Shown piece by piece: positions 17,073 to 49,182 of a DNA stretch of 64,000 bases. The DNA comes from Podarcis bocagei (taxonomy: Eukaryota), in the NCBI GenBank assembly GCA_964188305.1, contig OZ076896.1; one strand, written 5' to 3'. Both the position numbers and the translations under genes were made by a program. Each line of letters begins with the position of its first letter. Position 1 is the first letter of the stretch. The notes under the pieces were generated by a model, which was not told where the DNA came from, did no database searches, and worked only from the letters and a program-made list of their open reading frames with translations.

Positions 17073-17340
<268 letters not shown>

Positions 17341-28128: not shown

Positions 28129-28474
28129 GTATTGCTGCTTTCTGATTATGAACTTAATTGCTTCGTAAAATGAAACAATTAGTATATGCCAAATATTCAG
28201 GGAAGGGTCAATAAGTTTTTGGCTTCAGGGTTATTTCAGTTTAAAATATTCCAATTGCACTTTGGTTTTCAAACGTTTTAGAAGTCGAACGGACTTCCGA
28301 AACTTACTCCATTTGACTTCCAAGATACGACTGTATAATTATGTGGAGGAATGTATTTTCTGCATACATTTCAGCAGCAAATCAGCTTCATGTTGGTTAT
28401 CTCTTGCACTTTGCTTTTCAATGAACAGAATAATATGATAAATGACCTAAAGTATCCTGTTATTCATGTGGTGA

Positions 28475-28747
<273 letters not shown>

Positions 28748-29052
28748 TGAATGGTCTGACAGGCAGGCAAAATTCATCACATTTGATAGAAAGCTGAGAC
28801 TGCCCACCTTTCAGTTACCTGACACAGTATGCCTTTAGGTAATTCAGCCTCAAATGAATGAATTGTGCTCTCAATTTGTCCTTTATAGCTATGGCTTTAA
28901 TTCAAGCGAGGGCTTCATTCAGCAGTAAACGTGAGCGCCACCTTAGGCAGGGTTTGGTTGCACTTGGAGCTCCTGAATTGCGCCTATCAGAATAAGGCTT
29001 TCATTTGGAGCGAGGGAGAGAGAGGAGAGAGAATGATAAGTCTCTCTGATCT

Positions 29053-29187
29053 GAATCATAGAGTTGGAAGGGGCCTTGAGGATCAACTGATCGAACCTCC
29101 TGCAATGCAGGAATATACAGCTGTCCCCTACAGGGATCAAAACCTGCAACCTTTGCATTATCAGCACCACTCTAACCAACTGAGCTA
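29053..29187 (-). mobile_element. tRNA-derived SINE with CR1-like tail (Squam/POM-type)
   Basis: Minus strand begins TAGCTCAGTTGGTTAGAGTGG (A box), then a degenerate B box and a CR1-type 3' end. Confidence 0.7.
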
Positions 29188-29597
29188 CAACACATTAAAG
29201 AATCTGCAAACACACATCTCTACATAGTGTCCCATGTACTAGCTACCAACATGGACACAATCAGATCTTCATGCACTTGAGCCTCTTTTGGTGTCTCTGA
29301 AGGTGGCAACAGGGGCAGTGTCAGAATGGTGCCAAATGTAAAAGGCACTGAATGTTAGTACCTCTTGCAGAGGAACAGTTGGGAGTACATCAGTTGTGTG
29401 GCTGGGGTGCAGTTGCATGCAGTATTTCATGTGTGTATTAGACTCCATTAAGTTTCCCCTCATGAATTCTGTGAATTCTTTTGAAGGTCCCTTGAAACTT
29501 ATACTTTCAAGCTCTTAGAAGTACAGACAGGATTCTAAATAGACGTTGGAACAGTTTTGTAGATTCTGCTATTAACTTTCTTCATTGGTGGTTCTAG

Positions 29598-29880
29598 GTG
29601 GTTAAGCTTCATACTAAACTTGGCAAACCCATTCCTTCAACCGAACCAAACGTCGTGACCCAGGCTACTTCTGCAACATCTGCTTCCAAACCAACTGCTG
29701 TCTCTTCAAACATTGCAACTAACAGCAGCACTGTGAATTCTTCCGTTTCATCTTTGGCAGTGAAAATTCTTACTCCTTCCGCCAATGTGCTACTTAGCAC
29801 AACATCCAACAACAAGGCAACAATGGTTCCAGCTAATGTTGCTGTAAAGAAAATATCCACACCCAAAATTAACTTTGTTG
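29598..29880 (+). CDS. ZFR: ZFR exon 8 ([13 protein letters not shown]...PKINFV)
   Basis: tctag acceptor, TTG|gtaagt donor; 283 nt. Confidence 0.96.
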
Positions 29881-30556
29881 GTAAGTACTGAAGTATTTTA
29901 GTGAGAAGTATAGCAAGATACACTAAATAAGCTTATGCAAGAACAGGTTTAAAATGAGTGTCTGCTATGATTTTAACAGCTACTGGAAATTATAATTTTC
30001 TCTCTGCTTGGCTGCATGAAGCCCATCAAACCAAGCATCTGTTTGCAGTTCTAAGCACTGTCTCTCTCATGGCAATGTTTGTCTCATGCACACAAACTGC
30101 TACTCAAATGGTTTAGGAAAGTATTATATCAACACTACTCTGCTCCAACACGCCTTTTATTAGAGATTACAATACTGAACATGGGGCTACCATGGAACAC
30201 AACTCCTAATGTTGTATATGAACAATGCATTTTCAATAGCTGTCATAGAGTTTTGTTTGGTCAAGGCTCAGCATGTTCATGTCTTGCACCCAATTATCCT
30301 GTCCTCTTGAACGTCCCGGGCCGTGCTGTCATTATTAAAACAAACCATACAGTTTATTTGAACTTGTATTTTATTTATTTTAACTGTTGAACATTTATGT
30401 TACCTGTTCTTTGTGCTATGGCTTGCTTGCTTGTTTATTATTTACAGAATATCCAGGTTTTTAAGCAGTAGGCCAGCATCTCCTTGGTTGTGGCAAGAAA
30501 TGTGACTTGAAAATGTAATGAAAATTAATATTCACTTGTGAAATGTTTCATATTAG

Positions 30557-30753
30557 GTGGTAACAAGCTACAGACAACAGGAAGCAAAGTGGATGAATTA
30601 AAAGCAGTAGAAAATATAAAAACTACTCCTTCTGTTGCTGCAGTGCAAACACAGGAAATTAAGCCAGATATGTCTGCTGAATCGGTAACATCTACAGCTC
30701 TTGCTGCTTTGCAAAGTGAGGTCCAACCAGTGGGTCATGACTATGTCGAAGAG
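30557..30753 (+). CDS. ZFR: ZFR exon 9 (GGNKLQ...PVGHDYVEE)
   Basis: attag acceptor, GAG|gtattc donor; 197 nt. Confidence 0.96.
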
Positions 30754-30931
30754 GTATTCATTCAAAAACTATGTTCATTAAATGCAATTAAACAAAACTG
30801 CTGAATTAATGTGTTAGATTACTTTATATGGCTCAGAAGTGTGAAATCATGCTGATAATTAAATTAGCTTCATGTCTCTGTGTGAGGAAACTACTTGACT
30901 ATTTTGTCTATGAAAGAATTTGCAGTGGAGT

Positions 30932-31090
30932 ACGGCGTTTCCGTGCGCTGCTCTGGTTCACCAGAAGCAGCTTAGTCATGCTGGCCACATGACCCGGAAG
31001 CTGTACGCCGGCTCCCTCGGCCAATAAAGCGAGATGAGCGCCGCAACCCCAGAGTCGGTCACGACTGGACCTAATGGTTTACCTTTTTAC
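30932..31090 (+). mobile_element. Sauria SINE, 5'-truncated
   Basis: ACGGCGTTTCCGTGCGCTGC...TGACCCGGAAG...ACCTTT homologous to the 3' half of the 33138 copy. Confidence 0.82.
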
Positions 31091-32561
31091 TAATAGCATT
31101 GCTGCTGACTTCACAGCCTTTGTCTTCAGGTAAACTAGAGTGTGAATACTGAGACTGTCTTAACAATTCTGATCACTGAGGACATGGAGTGTCCTTCAAA
31201 ACTGACTGTTCAGAGTTCCAGCTCCAAAGGAACAGGTAGTGGGAATCAAGCGTTGACACTGATTTTGAAATTTTGCAAATCTGGAACAGTGGTTACATCA
31301 ATATAGTGTGTTGATATGTTGCACAGTTGCACCTACACTGTAGTGTGCCATCAGTATTACTGATGAATTTGTTCTTTTGCAATCACAGCATTACTGAGTG
31401 TCAGCTTTCACTCAGTAAAAGGAAAGACAAGAGATGAACATGCAGTAGCCTTCCACTTAGTGAGGATTCTTAACTTTCCTAACTATTGTTTTCCCCTGCA
31501 TGCTGCTCTGAAAATGTGCTCAGAGCAAATGTAGTATTAGGGAATAGTGTATTGCTTGATAGCATAGTTCTGAATGATTTACAATAAATAGCATTTTTAA
31601 CAAATCTGAAATATCACCTTGGAATACCTCATCAAAATTCAGACAGTTAAGAATTAAACCAACAGTTCTCCAACTTATTTGTTTAATGAATTCAGATGTA
31701 AGCACTCTGAAATAAAGTGGTTTTTGTCTGTTTCCTGAAAGCCATCAGGAAAGAAAAGGAGTTAAATGCCTCTGCTGGGAGCTTCACAGATGGGGCAAAA
31801 TTTGAGAACATTGTAAATTTAATAGCTACTGACCTTAAATGGCAGAGACACTCACAAGTGACCTTCCTCAGAAGATCTGAGGCTCAGGGCAGGATAGATG
31901 GACATTCTTTCAGGAATCCAGGTCCCATATTGTGTTGGGGGGGGTGTCTCATAGGTCTAACACAGGTTCTGATTAGGCCTTTGAAACCCTTTCCCCCAGA
32001 CCATGGCCAGCTGCCACATGTGTTACATATGTGACAGCAGATGAGAGGCAGGTAAGGACATGGCTCCAAAGGAACAATCAGGAGCTTAAAGTGAGGGGCA
32101 AATCCACACCATAAATTCAAAGCATCAAATGCATATTTAAAGTACTTGGCTTTCCCCAATAAATCCTGGAAACTGGTTTGTTATGGGTACTGGGAATTCT
32201 GTCTCTGTAGAGGGGAAGTACAGTTCTCGGGATTCTTTGGGAGAAGTCATGTAGCTTAAGTGTGCATTGTATTTGCTTTAAAAGTACAGTGTTTATTTGC
32301 CTTGAGTTCCCAATTGTTCCTTTGCAAGCAGGGCTTGCTGACAGAGAGTTCCACTAGGAAGTTCCCCATCCGGGATCTAGTTCTCCAACCTTAGTGTAGG
32401 GTTTTCAAGGTCATAATCAGCATTTTGAAGTGAGCCTAGAAATGCATAGCTAACCCCTGTAGATCTTTCAGGACAAGCGTTACATGCAGGGTATAGATCT
32501 TTCAGGATCAATATCCTACACAGTTTGCTCTGTTCAAAATTCTAGTCACTATGCTCTGGAC

Positions 32562-37499: not shown

Positions 37500-37866
37500 A
37501 GGGACGCGGGTGGCACTGTGGGTAAAACCTCAGTGCCTAGGACTTGCCAATCGTATGGTCGGCAGTTCGAACCCCCGCGGCGGGGTGAGCTCCCGTCTTT
37601 CGGTCCCAGCTCCTGCCCACCTAGCAGTTCAAAAGCACCCCTAAGTGCAAGTAGATAAATAGGTACCGCTTTGTAGCGGGAAGCTAAACGGCGTTTCCGT
37701 GTGCTTCGCTGGTGCCGGCTCGCCAGAGCAGCTTCGTCACGCTGGCCACGTGACCCGGAAGTGTCTCCGGACAGCGCTGGCCCCGGCCTCTTAAGTGAGA
37801 TGGGCGCACAACCCTAGAGTCGGACACGATGGGCCCGTACGGGCAGGGGTACCTTTACCTTTACCT
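37500..37866 (+). mobile_element. Sauria SINE, full length, young
   Basis: Same head and tail as the 33138 copy; TSD TAGTACTCCTT (37489-37499, 37867-37877). Confidence 0.93.
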
Positions 37867-38149
37867 TAGTACTCCTTGAGGATGGGGAAGACGGAAAGAA
37901 AAGAACACCTCTCTTCCCAATCTCCTTAAAACTCCACATTGTGTTATATAGTGCTAAAGAACACTGGTAGGAGATTGGCTGCCAACCCCAAACTTGAGCA
38001 TTTTAATGTTGTATAGCAGGTGCAGCGACCTCAGGCCTGGGGGCTGAAGGAAGCCCTCCAGGCCGCTCTGGCTCTGAGGACTCTCCCCTGGGCCACATGC
38101 CTCACTAGCCCTACTTCTCACACCCCTTGAGGGTAATAATAAAAAAATT

Positions 38150-38430
38150 TATTATTTATACCTTGCCCATCTGGCTGGGTTTTCCCAGCCACTCTGGACG
38201 GCTCCCAACAGAATATTAAAAACACGATGAAACATCGAGCATTAAAAACTTCCCTAAACAGGGCTGCCTTCAGATGTCTTCTAAAAGCCAGATAGTTGTT
38301 TATTTCCTTGACATCTGATGGGAGGGCATTCCACAGGGCGGGCGCCAATGTAGGTCTTTCAAGACCGGTGTTATATGGTCTCGGCGGCCAGTCACCAGTC
38401 TAGCTGCTGCATTCTGGATTAGTTGGAATG
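38150..38430 (-). mobile_element. L2-type LINE 3' fragment with internal deletion
   Basis: Minus-strand translation QLIQNAAARLVTG...DHITPVLKDLHW is typical of the L2 ORF2 C-terminus. Confidence 0.8.
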
Positions 38431-38971
38431 TGCCTTTGAACTCTTCTAGTGCTTCTTGCTTGCCTGGAAGGAGAATGGAGAGTGGTGTGAAAGTACGTCT
38501 AGAAACTAGCCTGCTAATTAGGTAAAAAATGCACCTGTTACTCGACCCATTTTTCTCTCTGGGTCCTCTCACAACTGGAATGGGCACACCCCCAGGCTAC
38601 CCAGAAAGGAATGTTAGCCCACTTTTGCTATATTCATTCAGGGAGCAGGGTGGATTATGCACAGTGGGGAAGCAGAACTTTATTTTTTCTTTCTCCCATC
38701 CTAAAACCTTCCAATATACAATGGGAAGGCCTTAACCTTATAATGGCCACCTGCTCCTTCCCTCCAGGATACTGTAACTTTGTTACAGACTCAAGTAAGC
38801 TAGTTCTCTCTCACATCTTACTATCCTTTAATGTATGAATTCATGATTTAGTCAAGGTACAGTACAAGGTACCTTGGCTAAACTCCCAAGCAACTTGTGA
38901 TGAACCTCCGGGTATTTTGGACTAGTCCCTTTTTGTGTGAAAACATTTAGCTTCTTATTTGCATTCTTTAG

Positions 38972-39113
38972 GTAATAAGTCCTGAGAAATATGAAATAAA
39001 GTGTGCAGGACAAGAAGCATCCATCATTTTGAATTCCTGTGTGGAACCTAAAATGCAAGTGACCATCACGTTGACATCACCAGTGATTCGGGAAGAGAAC
39101 ATGAGGGATGGAG
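38972..39113 (+). CDS. ZFR: ZFR exon 15 ([10 protein letters not shown]...REENMRDG)
   Basis: tttag acceptor, GAG|gttcgg donor; 142 nt, ends in phase 1. Confidence 0.95.
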
Positions 39114-42100
39114 GTTCGGAATCTGTTAAAAAATGCTCTATTTTAATTGGCTTATTCATTCTGTCATAAACGGCATTAAATCCTGGAAGGCAACATGCTG
39201 GCATGTGATACACATTTAATGGCAATTCATAAATCAAGCAGTCTTGTGTGTTTTTCCAAAACCTATTTTAGACTTATTCACTGCAACCAACAACCTCAGA
39301 TTTCTGGAAAATGTAGGTGTTTTTTTTAAATGTGCAAACCTGTCTTTCTTTGGAAAAAGTTAATGTTTATGACTCAAATACCTGCAAGTTGATAATCAAG
39401 AAGGCTTCCTCCCTAAGGGAGAAACTACACCAGGAAATTATATTGTATGTTTGAAACTGGATCAGTCTTAACCTTGACTTATATGGCACTTAGTTAATTT
39501 TTAAGTTCAAAGTGATTCTGGCTTTGTTTGGAGCAAGATGTGTATTTTTTTCCAGTTTTTTGAGGTTGGTTTCTGGACTGGAGTGCAAGACAAAGAGCTC
39601 CTAATATTGAGGTTGGAGTGTCTTAATTAAGCAGTACATTTGCAGTGTGTTTATAGTAAAGAGTGATAGCTGAGTTCAGTTAAGTAGATGTTGGAACTTT
39701 AAAACTCAATATGTATTTATGACCTGTGCGATCCTACTGGTGCCAGCAGTGTTGCTTTAGGGTCTCTTCTATAATTCTTTGAAAGCTACAAATGTTTTTA
39801 AGCCAGCAAGCATGATAATTTAATGTCTGCAATATGTTGGCTCTATTTAGAGGTCAGATAAAATGAACTTTCTTTTCTTTTGTCTTGTGTTGGTCAAAAT
39901 AAACTTTTTGCAGGCACAGTGGTATTGCTGGCTAAGAATACATAAGCATAGGAAGTAAGGCTCTATTTAAGTTCTTGTTAGTGTAGAGTGAGTGTGCTTG
40001 TGTACATACAGCTGTGGAATGAATTCTTAGCATTATGCTTTCAATATTTGAATAATTGCTTATGTTATTTTTTAAAAGTATAACTATTCTAGAAGCAAGC
40101 TTTCTTAAAAAAACAAAGCTTGAATATTAATGTACATAGGATTTTTCTTCCTGGTTTTTAAAACACTGCTTAAATTTACATAATACCATTGGCTTTTAAA
40201 TTCTGAAATAATCATAGATAACTTTGCTTGATTGCCCTGAGTTCTGTTTATTTATTCATCTTTACCAAACAACAGAATGAATGTCAGACATCACATTTGG
40301 TTATATGCAACCCGTAAAGATTTGGATAGAAAATTGCACAACTATTTTGAACACGATCTTGATGCCATTTCACTGTGCCAGTTAATTTCATGATCTGACT
40401 TCAAAAGGAAATAAAGCTCAATTTTTTTGTCTGACCCAAACATTAATTAGAGTTGCCATTCTAAGTTTGATAATACTAAGTTTGATAATATTAATAGAGG
40501 AAAGCAAAGCTTTTAAAATTTTTGAATCATTTCTTCAAGACACTGAGCAGCTTAAAATGAAAATGTGAAAAAGTTTACCTCTGAAATATGTGGTTTAACT
40601 GCAAATTGCAGTAAACAAGACTTTTATAAAGATCATTGTTTATGTGCTGCAAAAAAAAGTATACTCTTAACTGCAGCTCTTAATGCTCGGTGTCTTAACT
40701 TGGTTGATGGAATCTAGCTGGCTTTTGGGAGTTGAATTCAGGTGGCAAGGAAGGCTTTGCTGGAAGAACCCAATTTTAAGTAGATGTATTTCATTTGCTG
40801 GTTGAATAACATCTTATGTAATCCTATTCAGTTGCAAACTGAAGGGGAAGGGGAAGGTAAACACAAAACTGTTAACCATGTAGGATTTTGTTTCTTTACA
40901 GTTTTGTGCACTTAACAGTTAAATTTACAGAATTTGCTCTGGATATAAAGATTCTGTAACCCATGCTGCGGAATGTATTTCTTCAGCAAAGTGTATATGT
41001 TTATGTTTTTTATCCTTAGCTTATTAGCCCCGGTCCAAAGCCTTCTAGCAGAGACAATTGAATCCTGTCAGGGATTGCTGCCAAGACATCGGAAGGATTT
41101 TTGACCAAGGTTTTCTAAAGCTCAATGTCACACCTGCCATATTTTTGAGGGGGTTTGGTTGCATAGTCCTAGCATTTACTGTTACTTTTGTGTTTTGTCT
41201 TTTTTTCCCTTCTTGTCTTTGTCTCTCTCTTCTCTAGAATTAAGCAGTGTTCACACTAGCTTTGAAACAGTTGACTGGGTAATACTTAATTCACACCTGG
41301 AATTGAAAGCGCATGTCATACCTGTTAACTTTTTAATAACGAAATAGTGTGGACACAGCATGTCTTATTGAAGATTAACCCCTTATTTTTAGAATACAAG
41401 AAAAATAATCTGCAGTTTAAAAAAAAAAACTATGGTTGAAGCTAAGAGGGCACACTTGAATTCTGATTCATTTAATTTTAGGACCAGTTTTTAAGGGGTT
41501 AATCCACTTGGAGTCTTTATGCAAAAATCCACATATAGGAAAGTCTTTTAAATGGATATCCAGCCCAGATAAGTTCTCAATTTCTATAGCTGCTTCAGCA
41601 TCTTCTGATGGCTTCAAGGTTGATTCGCAATGGGTACACTCTATCTCCCACTGAGGTCAATGACAAATCTCAGCTTAATAGAGCTGGATCACCCACAATC
41701 TTGCTTGTCAGTTGTATATGGGTCTCTGGATCATTGCATCATATTTTTTTTAAAAAAGCAGTGCTTCGAAATACAAGTGTTTTAATACCATTATTTAAAT
41801 AATAATAATCCAGGACTTCAGTGATAATTAAACTGAGTCATTAACGCTATTTTCTTGCAAGTATTTTTTAGGAGAGTATAAATAGTTTTTATGAAACAAA
41901 GCTTGCTCCCACAAGCTATATAAAGTAGAATAAACTCTCCCTATTTTGTCAGAACTGTGAACTGAACTTTAAATGTGTCAATTATCAAATCGTACTGCTG
42001 ACTTTGGCCTCAGTTGACTCTTTTCCCTTAAATTTTCTCTCCTTTCACTTGATACATCTATAATCCTAATGTCTTCTTTCATTTGCTTTGAAATCTCTCA

Positions 42101-43533
42101 CTAATGTGACTCATTTTTCACTTCACTGTATCTGTATAGCCCATAAAATTCACCATGTTAAAATGGCATAAATCCCATTGCTAAAATGTTTTAAGACTTT
42201 TATATCCCACTGGTAAAATATTAATATAAGCATAAACAAATGAATTTCCTATGAGAGGTGTACAATTCAGGCATAGCATACTAAATGAAATTGAAATAAT
42301 TCTGTGCACAGCGGAAGTGTCATTTATATAAATTCTGGCTTGCATTCTCCTGACCTGTTTCTCTTCATTGATGGCTGACCTTCAAGCCAAATCTGTTAAT
42401 ATCTTGGTTTGCGTTCTTTTCCTAGTTGGTGTGTTCCATGAGTCTTTGATTTGCTGTTATGAGTATGTTTGCTTAAATTAGACTACATTTTAATGTCCCA
42501 TCTGCTAAATAATCCAGGCAAAGTCTGGTTGCATTCAACATTTATTTTAACAGCAATTTTGTATTAGCAGAAAATTAAAAAATATCTAGAAATACTCTTG
42601 GCTGCTCAGCAGGCAGTTACAACATATTTAGGAACAGTAATTATAACTGACACAGAAGCCTTGTTTGGAAAATAAGAATTTACCAGATGCAGTGTTGTTC
42701 TTTCTATCACTGCTGTTGCTTCTGCTTTTCCTGGTTTTGATTTTTCCTCTACTTCCTTCTCTTAAGACCCCTCTTTCTTGTTTTCTTCTGGTATACCCCT
42801 GGATGAAATTGGGATGGATATACACAGCATGCACCTTGGTGCAATAGGAGCCTAGAGGGTTTAAGAAATACAAAAATGTACAGGTGCTCTTGACTTGAAT
42901 TTTACAAAGTATTTCACATCCCTTCAGACTCCATAAAACCAAAAAATCTGGATTGTTTCTATAAGTATAGTTTTACCTTACCTTAATGGGAGGTATCCTA
43001 GTACATCATGGGTCTTGACTGCTCAGGAAGAATTTTGACCCATTAACTAGGACTAAGACTAAGGTAGCATGCGGCCATTTTAGGTTGTCCCAACAAACAC
43101 AGGGCACAATCCACTGCGAAGTTATTCTGCACAAGCACCATTAAAATGGATGGGAACTTAACAGAAATGCCCATTCAGTTCAGTGGGGCCCACACAGAAG
43201 AACTTCACAATAGATTTTGCTCAGAGTTTGTTGTAACTTTTGCTTCATTCAAGTGGATTTTTGTGTTCCTTCTGTCTTGTGTTTCCTGTGCTGGTGCACT
43301 GTGTCCAACCATTCTTCCTTCAACATTTTAATTTTAGGGGAAATTTATTTTTCCAGAGGATTTTTTTTCACAAATAGATGGACATAAAAAAAATAAGATT
43401 GAGAGCTAACCTTGCATTATGCTCTTGATTACTTTTTGTATTGGGCTCAATGACCACATACAGATTAAGGGATTATTACTACTGAATACGAATACATTGG
43501 AGATAGGGATTGCAATATAAATGGCACGTGTGA

Positions 43534-43745
43534 NNNNNNNNNNNNNNNNNNNNNNNNNNNNNNNNNNNNNNNNNNNNNNNNNNNNNNNNNNNNNNNNNNN
43601 NNNNNNNNNNNNNNNNNNNNNNNNNNNNNNNNNNNNNNNNNNNNNNNNNNNNNNNNNNNNNNNNNNNNNNNNNNNNNNNNNNNNNNNNNNNNNNNNNNNN
43701 NNNNNNNNNNNNNNNNNNNNNNNNNNNNNNNNNNNNNNNNNNNNN
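43534..43745. other. ZFR: 212-nt N-run, inferred to hide ZFR exon 16 (about 98 nt)
   Basis: Exon 15 ends in phase 1 and exon 17 starts in phase 0; the recalled segment [33 protein letters not shown] was not found in readable sequence between them. Confidence 0.8.
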
Positions 43746-44526
43746 TAGCCTTATGAGAGAGAGTAGTTCAGTTGTTCGGTTGGATGTTAAACTATGCGGA
43801 AAACTAAAGGTTGCCCATAGTAAATATGTGTATATATATCTATTATGTGTACTCATATATAAAATTAAATGACATGGGGGAAATTAATTCATCTTGGAAG
43901 ATCTGTATAGAAGAACTGCTTTATGCCGTTCTTGCCAATTTGACGTCAACTTGTTTTTCTGGCCACTGAGATAGCGAAGTTGAAAGCTTGACTCGCTGGG
44001 GGAAATCGTATGTTTTGTATTGGTAATGTGTTCCATAAGGCTGCAGAGTAACTTTGCTTTAAATAACAGAATGTGTGTTTAAAGCTTTGTGTGTTAGATG
44101 TAAGACTTTTACCCTTTATTTCTTGAAGCTTATTAAGTGTAGGGAATGAAAGGTGAGAAACTATTTGGTTTGGTGACTTTGCACTCCAGCAAAGGTACGA
44201 CAGAGAAACCAAACAGATTCCCATAGCCTTTCAGTCTCTCTACTTGTTAGCTCTTTACTCCTGTATTTCTATTATAGGAAGGTAATTGTATTTTCTGTAC
44301 GAATGAACCAAAGTGTGCAGGAATTCAAGGGATATTAGTCTTGTATAACCTGTGCACCTTGACTTCTCAATTACTAACCTTGGCATAAAATGCTTCTGTA
44401 AATGGCAGCTCCTGGAATGTTTCATGTGGCTTGTTTCTTTTCTGTGTCTGAGCTTCCATTGAACAGTGGTGTTTTAGCTTCTCTAAGAGGCCTATATTCT
44501 ATTGGTGCTGGGATTGATTAACTTGA

Positions 44527-44685
<159 letters not shown>

Positions 44686-47323: not shown

Positions 47324-47440
<117 letters not shown>

Positions 47441-47596
47441 TAGCAGTCATAGTCCACACTTGAAATACTGTGTTAAACTGATTGGTTTGTCTACTTTACA
47501 CATTATTTTGTTACAGTATAGGAAGAATGAAATAATACTATCTTCATGAAATTAGTAAAAAGAAAAAGAAAATAAAGTTTACTTTTTTGTTTATAG

Positions 47597-49002: not shown

Positions 49003-49182
49003 TTTGCATTGAGACTCCTTGCATTCCGTCAAATACACAAAGTTTTAGGAATGGATCCCTTGCCCCAGATGAACCAGCGCTTCAATATTCACAACAATCG
49101 TAAAAGGAGAAGGGACAGTGATGGAGTTGATGGCTTTGAAGCTGAGGGGAAGAAAGACAAGAAAGATTATGATAACTTTTAA
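49003..49182 (+). CDS. ZFR: ZFR exon 20, last coding ([20 protein letters not shown]...[10 protein letters not shown])
   Basis: cacag acceptor, TAA at 49180-49182; with a 98-nt exon 16 the CDS totals 3201 nt = 1066 aa. Confidence 0.98.

Follow-up and report, generated by a model that had tools for sequence, protein, structure and literature searches.

The window analysed here, a 64,000-nt stretch of the Podarcis bocagei genome, contains exons 15 to 18 of ZFR and the introns between them (Table 1). Exon 15 ends in phase 1 and exon 17 starts in phase 0. Exon 16 would lie inside a run of N bases; the stretches opposite this run in Varanus, Crotalus and Antechinus are also 212 nt long and contain a 98-nt exon 16 bounded by AG and GT. 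The exon has this length in five orthologues, which were used only for its length, its boundaries and the position of stops. It encodes residues ∼877–909, the end of the Pfam domain DZF_N (716–913), and in this part of the protein Lagopus and four other amniotes do not differ at all (100% identity). The exon 15 donor (GAG/GTT) is conserved and weak, with a T at +3 in all nine species compared and position-weight (PWM) scores of 3.4–4.9 bits. The exon 17 acceptor is likewise weak and conserved.

Within intron 15 (4420 nt) lies a 41-nt exon-like segment, which had been put forward from this single genome as a micro-exon with a very strong 3′ splice site. Its anatomy is as described: the 48 nt at 41186–41233 are 90% pyrimidine (87% over 41176–41235), the acceptor AG is in the top 7 of the 4322 AGs of the + strand (12.6 bits on a simple position-weight score), and the reading of the segment, including the G carried over from exon 15, is open (ELSSVHTSFETVDW) and ends in a TGG/GTAATA donor. 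This donor is weak, and 19% of all GTs score as high (2.8 bits). Two downstream GCATG motifs of RBFOX type had also been reported; both are present, although the second starts at 41358 and not at 41359. They lie ≤85 nt from the segment, a density found in 0.5% of 100-nt windows. Neither extends to a full TGCATG, and no TGCATG occurs between 40000 and 43000. The second motif is kept in all species and overlaps one arm of a helix described later in the text (box Y).

The segment enters in phase 1 and exits in phase 0, as exon 16 must, and the consequences originally drawn for the reading frame were borne out. If it replaced exon 16 (41 nt against 98 nt), the protein would be ∼19 residues shorter, and the reading is open when the segment is joined straight to exon 17. 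Joint inclusion with exon 16 would shift the frame: exon 17 is stop-free in the +2 frame, where the first stop is the TAG at nt 14–16 of exon 18, and in four orthologues the first stop already falls at nt 4–6 of exon 16. The premature stop comes no later than exon 18, with exons 19 and 20 following, and so lies more than ∼50 nt upstream of the last exon junction, as expected of a poison exon.

Table 1. Features of the ZFR exon 15–18 region in the window
Feature	Position	Strand	Remarks
ZFR exon 15	38972..39113	+	ends in phase 1; conserved weak donor GAG/GTT
Pyrimidine tract upstream of candidate acceptor	41176..41235	+	87–90% pyrimidine
Candidate 3′ splice site AG	41236..41237	+	PWM 12.6 bits; kept in 7/9 species
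Exon-like segment (micro-exon of the original prediction)	41238..41278	+	41 nt; 28/41 columns invariant; indel-free in 9 species
Helix H1 5′ arm (box X), inside candidate exon	41244..41258	+	pairs with 41345–41359
Candidate 5′ splice site GTAATA, weak	41279..41284	+	PWM 2.8 bits; GT in 6/9 species
First GCATG	41311..41315	+	restricted to Podarcis, Varanus and Crotalus; Lerista, birds and mammals lack it
Helix H1 3′ arm (box Y)	41345..41359	+	invariant except mismatch position; 41358–9 begin the GCATG at 41358
Helix H2 5′ arm	41373..41385	+	perfect 13-bp complement of 41492–41504
Helix H2 3′ arm	41492..41504	+	complement of 41373–41385
Long-range helix H3 5′ arm	41520..41532	+	11 Watson–Crick + 2 G.U pairs with 43253–43265
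Long-range helix H3 3′ arm	43253..43265	+	invariant in 9 species; 1.7 kb from 5′ arm
Box Z, alternative partner of box Y	43299..43307	+	9 perfect pairs with 41350–41358
N run, 212 nt	43534..43745	.	98-nt exon 16 inferred at ∼43619–43716
Helix H4 5′ arm, directly after N run	43747..43755	+	9-bp perfect complement of 44034–44042, 9 amniotes
Helix H4 3′ arm	44034..44042	+	complement of 43747–43755
ZFR exon 17	44545..44640	+	starts in phase 0; weak conserved acceptor, 4.9 bits
TAG in shifted frame, exon 18	47337..47339	+	exon 18 nt 14–16

An acceptor and a donor of such quality come together about once per 9 kb in the window. Moreover, each of the seven + strand acceptors this strong has an equal or better donor within 250 nt, and a matching phase with an open frame would be expected in about one case in six. 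The anatomy of the segment alone is within chance, and could have been that of a pseudo-exon in an ordinary intron; its conservation in amniotes is, however, beyond chance. The ZFR loci of eight other amniotes were compared with that of Podarcis, in which positions 41062–41124 were masked, giving a set of nine species that includes the squamates Podarcis, Varanus, Crotalus and Lerista, the birds Lagopus, pigeon and a third species (L001), and the mammals Antechinus and a eutherian (L002). The latter was judged to be a non-primate, as the product of its exon 12 differs at 3 of 58 residues from horse, dog and hyena and at 5 from the primate cluster. The block around the segment is 74–81% identical over ∼270–450 nt in snake, monitor, skink, two birds and the marsupial, and 67% identical in the eutherian contig; a 13-nt core of the segment is invariant. 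A chance pseudo-exon is refuted by this conservation of the block across amniotes, and we give that explanation practically no credence. By this comparison the segment is a real, selected element, kept since before the split of reptiles and mammals.

Conservation of exon length and of the AG/GT boundaries had been named as a check on the micro-exon, and the result was mixed. The length of 41 nt is unchanged in all nine species, with 28 of 41 columns invariant. The AG is kept in seven and lost in two of the four squamates, Lerista (CG) and Crotalus (GG), where other AGs occur 7–9 nt downstream. The GT is kept in six species, all of them among the seven sauropsids, with scores of 2.8–4.3 bits; it is replaced by AT in the bird L001 and in Antechinus and by TT in the eutherian. 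One or other splice dinucleotide is thus lost in five of nine species, and both are less conserved than the core of the exon. AG, GT and length are all intact in Podarcis, Varanus, Lagopus and both pigeon copies, and four of the nine species combine both splice sites with an open frame. The upstream tract varies in length by indels, and its last 40 nt stay 78–93% pyrimidine in the nine amniotes.

According to the original prediction, the segment could act as an isoform switch, that is, as an alternative coding exon that replaces exon 16 to give an in-frame, shorter ZFR with a remodelled DZF domain. The phases do match, no stop interrupts the reading when the segment is joined to exon 17, and the frame of the segment itself is open in seven species. 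However, the other two carry in-frame stops, and codon positions 1, 2 and 3 have nearly equal numbers of variable columns (4, 4 and 5, respectively), with nearly all changes nonsynonymous and the core invariant at all three positions. From this even spread and the stops in two species, the segment is under no coding constraint. The two exons would share their phases as a mutually exclusive pair, but their lengths are unlike and the coding sequence of the segment is unconstrained, whereas the residues of exon 16 that it would displace close the DZF_N domain and do not vary among the five amniotes compared. Consistently, peptide words of the segment are absent from all 390 ZFR proteins fetched. 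Motifs of both exon 15 and exon 17 were found in 89 of the proteins; 86 of these have the two motifs spaced by 35 residues, and the three exceptions are intron read-throughs in gene models. Together with the splice sites lost in more than half of the species, these observations speak against the switch, and we regard an alternative coding exon as highly improbable. Neural microexons, which are 3–27 nt long, in frame and SRRM4-dependent, resemble the ZFR segment in their shortness, the long upstream pyrimidine tract and the conserved flanks. Unlike them, the segment, at 41 nt, is longer and not a multiple of 3, its peptide is unconserved, and there is no UGC beside its acceptor.

The conservation is not confined to the segment. 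Introns 15 and 16 align between Podarcis and Crotalus over 100% of their length, with identities of 70% and 86%, respectively, and between Podarcis and Varanus over 96–100%. Against two birds, 43–51% of intron 15 and 80% of intron 16 are alignable, and the marsupial locus has the same conserved islands. Most other ZFR introns are alignable over 1–20% in squamates and 0–5% in birds, a few short introns being the exceptions, and exons 15 and 17 mark the limits of the conserved zone. A search of 41125–43533 against Rfam gave only two sub-threshold chance matches.

Several of the invariant boxes in these introns are complementary to each other. Helix H1 joins the core of the segment (box X) to box Y by arms of 15 positions each, ∼100 nt apart, through 13 Watson–Crick pairs, one U.G pair and one A.A mismatch (duplex ∼−19 kcal/mol). 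It is found in every species with sequence and is present in the minimum-energy fold, and the sole variable column of its 5′ arm is the mismatched A. Both arms of H2 are invariant, and its loop differs in sequence and length between species. In the long-range helix H3, one G.U pair is replaced by A-U in Antechinus. Box Y can alternatively pair with box Z, where a substitution in Lagopus retains a U.G pair. Both H4 boxes are also found in gar. The box network is amniote-invariant, and H4 extends to ray-finned fish.

Among 22 invariant intronic runs (259 nt), we counted three perfect reverse-complement pairs, of 13, 11 and 9 nt. In 1000 shuffles the mean was 0.004 such pairs and none reached three; control matches among the runs comprised no direct, no reversed and one 9-nt complement-only match. 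Each helix is intact wherever a species has sequence. In the main set of nine species the helix arms carry three substitutions, each of which either affects a mismatched or wobble position or leaves a pair intact or improved; a second pigeon copy has one further change, which breaks the outermost H1 pair. Moreover, the U.G pairs of H1 and H3 fit the + strand only. No double compensatory changes were seen; since the arms are invariant, there is no true compensatory covariation. The fold of 41125–41520 (396 nt) as a whole is no more stable than shuffles (z = 0.06). As judged from these comparisons, we have shown that the boxes are conserved and mutually complementary beyond chance.

An intronic cluster of invariant non-coding blocks is a typical mark of developmental enhancers, and the blocks in ZFR could accordingly be a DNA-level enhancer cluster for ZFR or a neighbour, with the exon-like frame and the complementarity as by-products. 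The unremarkable thermodynamic stability would agree with this. However, an enhancer predicts neither reverse complementarity between invariant blocks, nor substitutions that avoid paired positions, nor wobble pairs that hold for the sense strand alone, and the confinement of the conserved zone between exons 15 and 17 also argues against it. We consider this explanation improbable.

The reading that we favour, with moderate confidence, is that the 41-nt segment is a conserved structural or regulatory element of the ZFR pre-mRNA, exon-like in its lizard copy, and probably not a coding exon. Its core would serve as one arm of a helix whose other arm lies ∼100 nt downstream, and would belong to a set of invariant complementary boxes that extends across introns 15 and 16 and flanks the near-invariant exon 16. 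The boxes would fold in the sense transcript, and the folds may tune the splicing of a poorly defined region, which has a weak donor at exon 15 and a weak acceptor at exon 17. This would probably result in a balance of productive splicing against retention of introns 15 and 16 or loss of exon 16. The AG and GT that frame the core in the lizard would then be largely incidental and would allow, at most, rare and unproductive inclusion. Products truncated just after exon 15 are known in other vertebrates (Anolis sagrei X2, Rhinophrynus), and 15 assembled transcripts share a tail that is exactly the intron 15 read-through of the eutherian locus. The tail of a caecilian isoform (AFQLLSKVF) was not found in the nine loci. 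The conserved weak donor of exon 15 and the read-through products are hints of regulated splicing around exon 16.

A genuine weak cassette of sauropsids, acting as a poison or decoy exon, is a possible alternative, which we hold to be doubtful. By one route, occasional inclusion together with exon 16 would lead to frameshift and nonsense-mediated decay; by another, the strong acceptor would be engaged non-productively, resulting in retention of intron 15. The helix and the downstream GCATG would in that case modulate use of the segment. The intact splice sites in Podarcis, Varanus, Lagopus and both pigeon copies, the tract present in all species, a length that is not a multiple of 3 with an early stop when exon 16 is included, and the products ending after exon 15 are all in line with a cassette, as is a setting like that of published decoy exons (PMC6097662). 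However, the donor is weak where it is present, and one bird and both mammals lack it; Lerista and Crotalus lack the AG, the splice dinucleotides evolve faster than the core, and the peptide is in no annotated product. In sauropsids the segment would be, at most, a weak cassette of the poison or decoy type, and not an isoform switch. Against the reading that we favour, the kept tract, the AG in 7/9 species, the fixed 41-nt length and the GT in 6/7 sauropsids are equally expected of a real weak cassette.

Decoy exons are cryptic cassettes, short (29–56 nt) and conserved, that lie within large retained introns of RNA-processing genes; the introns are themselves extremely conserved, and examples occur in SF3B1 intron 4, OGT, ARGLU1 and DDX39B (Parra et al. 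2018, PMC6097662). The ZFR locus likewise combines a short exon-like block (41 nt), a good acceptor and a host intron of >1 kb that is highly conserved and belongs to an RNA-processing gene, and read-through products of this intron exist, here in relatives. In decoy exons, however, the two splice sites are both conserved and required, junction reads emerge once decay is blocked, and U2AF is bound (PMC6097662), whereas the donor of the ZFR segment is weak or missing in several lineages. The locus can also be compared with the ultraconserved poison exons of splicing regulators (AS-NMD; 10.1101/2022.06.15.495552): ZFR is the gene of an RNA-binding protein, conservation extends into introns, and inclusion would bring a premature stop. 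In those genes the poison exon and its splice sites form the conserved unit and their use is documented, whereas in ZFR conservation is highest for exon 16, a constitutive coding exon, together with its introns.

A further parallel, which touches the reading that we favour, is offered by conserved complementary regions that occur in pairs and by long-range pre-mRNA structures that compete with each other (Kalmykova et al. 2021, PMC8052449; ATE1, PMC7797038; BRD2/BRD3, PMC10789245). The ZFR boxes are similarly invariant, intronic and 9–15 nt long, could pair locally and over 1.7–1.9 kb, and adjoin an exon whose loss would be unproductive; as in ATE1, box Y could pair with either of two boxes, X or Z. 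They differ from those regions in showing no compensatory double changes. ZFR is not named in the main text and supplements examined of the complementary-region catalogue (PMC8052449). What began as a micro-exon guess in a single genome becomes a concrete map around the near-invariant exon 16, comprising ∼5 conserved helices, the exon-like block and a weak donor that is itself conserved, and it illustrates that an exon-like frame in a conserved intron need not be a coding exon.

ZFR itself is a dsRNA-binding regulator of alternative splicing, and many ultraconserved splicing-factor genes have unproductive isoforms under its control (10.1101/2022.06.15.495552); no paper on its regulation through its own introns was found in the literature searched. 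The box network (X-Y, Y-Z, H2, the 1.7-kb H3 and H4) could be the dsRNA sensor of a ZFR autoregulatory loop, an idea that we consider unlikely. ZFR and its DZF relatives, as dsRNA binders, would read the helices of the pre-mRNA, and this reading would shift productive splicing of exon 16 against intron detention or unproductive splicing, with the exon-like block as a competitor arm or decoy of the switch. Finally, we noted that read runs X1–X12, presumed to be RNA, contain a fraction of 0.70–0.73 of the words sampled from intron 15.

The candidate, a 41-nt exon-like segment at 41238-41278 in intron 15 of ZFR, was originally predicted to be a micro-exon, and the anatomy ascribed to it is present. 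A 48-nt run (41186-41233, 90% pyrimidine) precedes an acceptor AG at 41236-7, the segment has the open reading ELSSVHTSFETVDW with the G carried from exon 15, and it ends in the donor TGG/GTAATA. Its phases are also right, as exon 15 leaves phase 1 at 39113 and exon 17 begins in phase 0 at 44545. Two GCATG copies, regarded as RBFOX-type motifs, do lie at 41311 and 41358, a density of two per 100 nt that only 0.5% of windows reach; the longer TGCATG is matched by neither copy. Splice sites were scored with a simple position-weight matrix using textbook frequencies (approximate values). The acceptor proved very strong, as claimed: at 12.6 bits it is among the top 7 of the 4322 AGs on the + strand and exceeds three real ZFR acceptors scored. 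The donor reaches 2.8 bits, a score matched or bettered by 19% of all GTs, and such a donor is found within 250 nt of all seven top acceptors. The AG/GT anatomy alone is thus a chance expectation, with about one site per 9 kb.

The ZFR genes of pigeon, rattlesnake, Komodo monitor, ptarmigan, a marsupial, gar and a skink were compared, with searches made by single exons and with places 41062-41124 left out of the sequence comparisons. Among protein representatives, exon 12 alone matched a fish ZFR and short products from two assembled contigs that carry exons 12-17, L001 and L002; word searches from the fish protein led to annotated ZFR proteins across vertebrates. L001 behaves as a bird, and L002 appears, judging by its exon 12 product, to be a non-primate eutherian, for which reason it was not taken for human. 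In pigeon, the exon 12-15 region is duplicated (28216-31430 and 37789-40815 of the pigeon locus L003), which is why the pigeon ZFR model has 1254 residues; in the second copy, a stretch of N lies over the region of helices H1 and H2 (see below).

Lizards and birds are separated by roughly 280 million years, and sauropsids and mammals by roughly 320 million years. Among the nine amniotes aligned, the exon length is constant (41 nt without indel in 9/9), and of the boundaries the AG is present in seven species and the GT in six. The AG is replaced by CG in Lerista and by GG in Crotalus, both with other AGs 7-9 nt downstream, and the GT by AT in the bird L001 and in Antechinus and by TT in the eutherian; wherever a GT exists, the donor is weak (2.8-4.3 bits). 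The pyrimidine tract varies in length and stays 78-93% pyrimidine. Beside 28 invariant columns of 41 (alignments A1 and A2), pure chance, which would suffice for the AG/GT anatomy, is scarcely credible as an explanation of the segment. The two splice-site bases that vary (A in the AG, G in the GT) do so more often than the segment's 13-nt core, which has no change at any codon position. The frame is open in seven species, and the two with stops also have no GT. Variable columns are spread evenly over codon positions 1, 2 and 3 (4/4/5), and changes among intact copies are nearly all nonsynonymous (E>D, L>F, S>R, S>N, F>L/V, T>I). Taken with the invariant core, these patterns mark a constraint on nucleotides and not on the peptide.

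The effect of including the segment depends on exon 16. The sole N run in the window (43534-43745, 212 nt) covers the place that this exon has to occupy. Opposite it, Varanus, Crotalus and Antechinus have a stretch that is, from its coordinates, likewise 212 nt, and because of this exact agreement the run looks like masking rather than an assembly gap. Within the orthologous stretch is an exon 16 of 98 nt, bounded by AG and GT; by orthology, exon 16 would lie at about 43619-43716 in the window. Orthologues were used for its length, boundaries and stop position only. Exon 16 codes for residues ~877-909, the end of Pfam DZF_N, and its product is identical in five amniotes (Lagopus against four others). 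This speaks against an in-frame isoform switch in which the candidate replaces exon 16. The frame would indeed be kept, but the peptide is unconstrained across the nine amniotes; it was found in none of 390 ZFR proteins, and the spacing of the exon 15 and exon 17 motifs is 35 residues in 86 of the 89 proteins having both. Three proteins with other spacings were rejected as variants, being intron read-through in gene models. We regard such a switch as very improbable. Inclusion of both the segment and exon 16 would add 41 nt and shift the frame, as predicted; the window then has a stop no later than exon 18 (TAG, 47337-9), and Varanus, Lagopus, Crotalus and Lerista meet their first one at nt 4-6 of exon 16. 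A tentative reading, second in rank, is that in sauropsids the segment also serves as a weak cassette, a poison or decoy exon: its acceptor and frameshift would suit this role, and one of its boundaries is lost in each of Lerista, Crotalus and the bird L001. The apparent end of exon 18 is AAAG followed by GCAAGT (47432-47442), so that the intron would be of the GC-AG type, its donor perfect in all other respects.

Introns 15 and 16 (39114-44544) stand far above most other introns of the gene in conservation. Against Crotalus they align over 100% of their length with 70% and 86% identity, against Varanus over 96-100% (78% and 90%), and against two birds over 43-51% and 80%, respectively; for most other ZFR introns the aligned share is 1-20% in squamates and 0-5% in birds. 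In the other squamates and the birds of the comparison, intron 16 keeps 79-90% identity over ~800-900 nt. The same conserved islands are found in the marsupial, where about half aligns, and gar keeps intron 16 (64% identity over 637 nt) and one intron 15 block. One island covers about 40.4-41.4 kb, and the candidate lies at its 3' end.

The exon 15 donor reads GAG/GTT, with T at +3, in 9/9 species and scores 3.4-4.9 bits, which makes it a poor 5' splice site, though a conserved one; weakness and conservation are found in the exon 17 acceptor too. ZFR products ending directly after exon 15 occur in Anolis sagrei (isoform X2, P0311), a frog and a caecilian, and the tail of P0318, a cluster of 15 assembled transcripts, is an exact intron 15 read-through of L002. 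The short tail of the caecilian product differs from it and was not found in the nine loci searched. The weak donor, the weak acceptor and the truncated products hint that splicing around exon 16 is regulated. Twelve small runs, X1-X12 (~100 million letters, three studies), which are guessed to be RNA, contain 0.70-0.73 of the words sampled from the mostly intronic stretch 38900-43533, not far below the 0.76-0.77 of four large related-organism runs (1.3-2.0 billion letters, taken as whole-genome). If X1-X12 are RNA, intron 15 would be abundant in transcripts. ZFR itself is a dsRNA-binding protein that controls splicing in other genes, acting on exons of the cassette and mutually exclusive types, on detained introns and on ultraconserved poison exons (10.1101/2022.06.15.495552). 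An alternative promoter in exon 13 gives rise to its known short isoform (PMC5861047); no literature on its own introns 15-16 was found.

Aligning exon 15 to exon 17 in the nine species gave 22 invariant intronic runs of at least 9 nt (259 nt in total), among which three pairs, H2, H3 and H4, are perfect reverse complements. Shuffled runs gave a mean of 0.004 perfect pairs and reached three in 0/1000 trials; controls gave no direct or reversed match and one complement-only match of 9 nt. The minimum-energy fold pairs the arms of H2 and also those of H1, boxes X and Y, one arm of which is the exon core. In H1, 13 positions are Watson-Crick pairs, one is a U.G and one an A.A mismatch (about -19 kcal/mol), and the helix can form in every species with sequence. 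Box Y also has an alternative partner, box Z.

Coordinates of ZFR and of the splice sites and paired boxes around exon 16
Feature	Length	Position	Description
ZFR		exon 1 near 17290 to stop at 49179	+ strand
Exon 15 donor		39111-39119
Exon 17 acceptor		44523-44544
H1 (boxes X/Y)		41244-41258 / 41345-41359	paired in minimum-energy fold
H2	13 nt	41373-41385 / 41492-41504	perfect reverse complement of invariant runs
H3	11 nt	41522-32 / 43253-63, 1.7 kb apart	perfect reverse complement of invariant runs
H4	9 nt	43747-55 / 44034-42	perfect reverse complement of invariant runs
Boxes Y/Z		41350-58 / 43299-43307	alternative perfect pairing

Across the main nine-species set, helix arms carry only three substitutions: two on the mismatched As of H1, one of which retains U.G in Y-Z, and one turning a G.U of H3 into A-U. 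The second pigeon copy has one additional change, which breaks the outermost H1 pair. As the arms are invariant, no compensatory covariation was seen in the nine species. The region gave no Rfam match, and its overall folding stability did not exceed that of shuffles (z = 0.06). Both H4 boxes are present in gar; those of H1-H3 were not found there. A DNA-level enhancer would be one source of conserved blocks, but it leaves the complementarity unexplained and is unlikely; the wobble pairs are compatible with the sense strand only. The best supported reading, which we hold with moderate confidence, is that the candidate is a conserved non-coding RNA element (helix arm plus pyrimidine tract) within a structured module around exon 16, and that its lizard AG...GT frame is largely incidental. 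Among systems already described, it comes nearest to decoy exons in conserved retained introns (PMC6097662) and conserved complementary region pairs, including competing structures (PMC8052449, PMC7797038).

The H2 arms read TTAA-CCCC...GGGG-TTAA, resembling the ends of a TTAA-inserting transposon; if this is their origin, the ends have since been invariant across amniotes and the interior has diverged. A further invariant box pair, 39740-39748 / 43289-43297, would allow 9 pairs, including two G.U, over a 3.5 kb span, and its 5' box is also present in gar.
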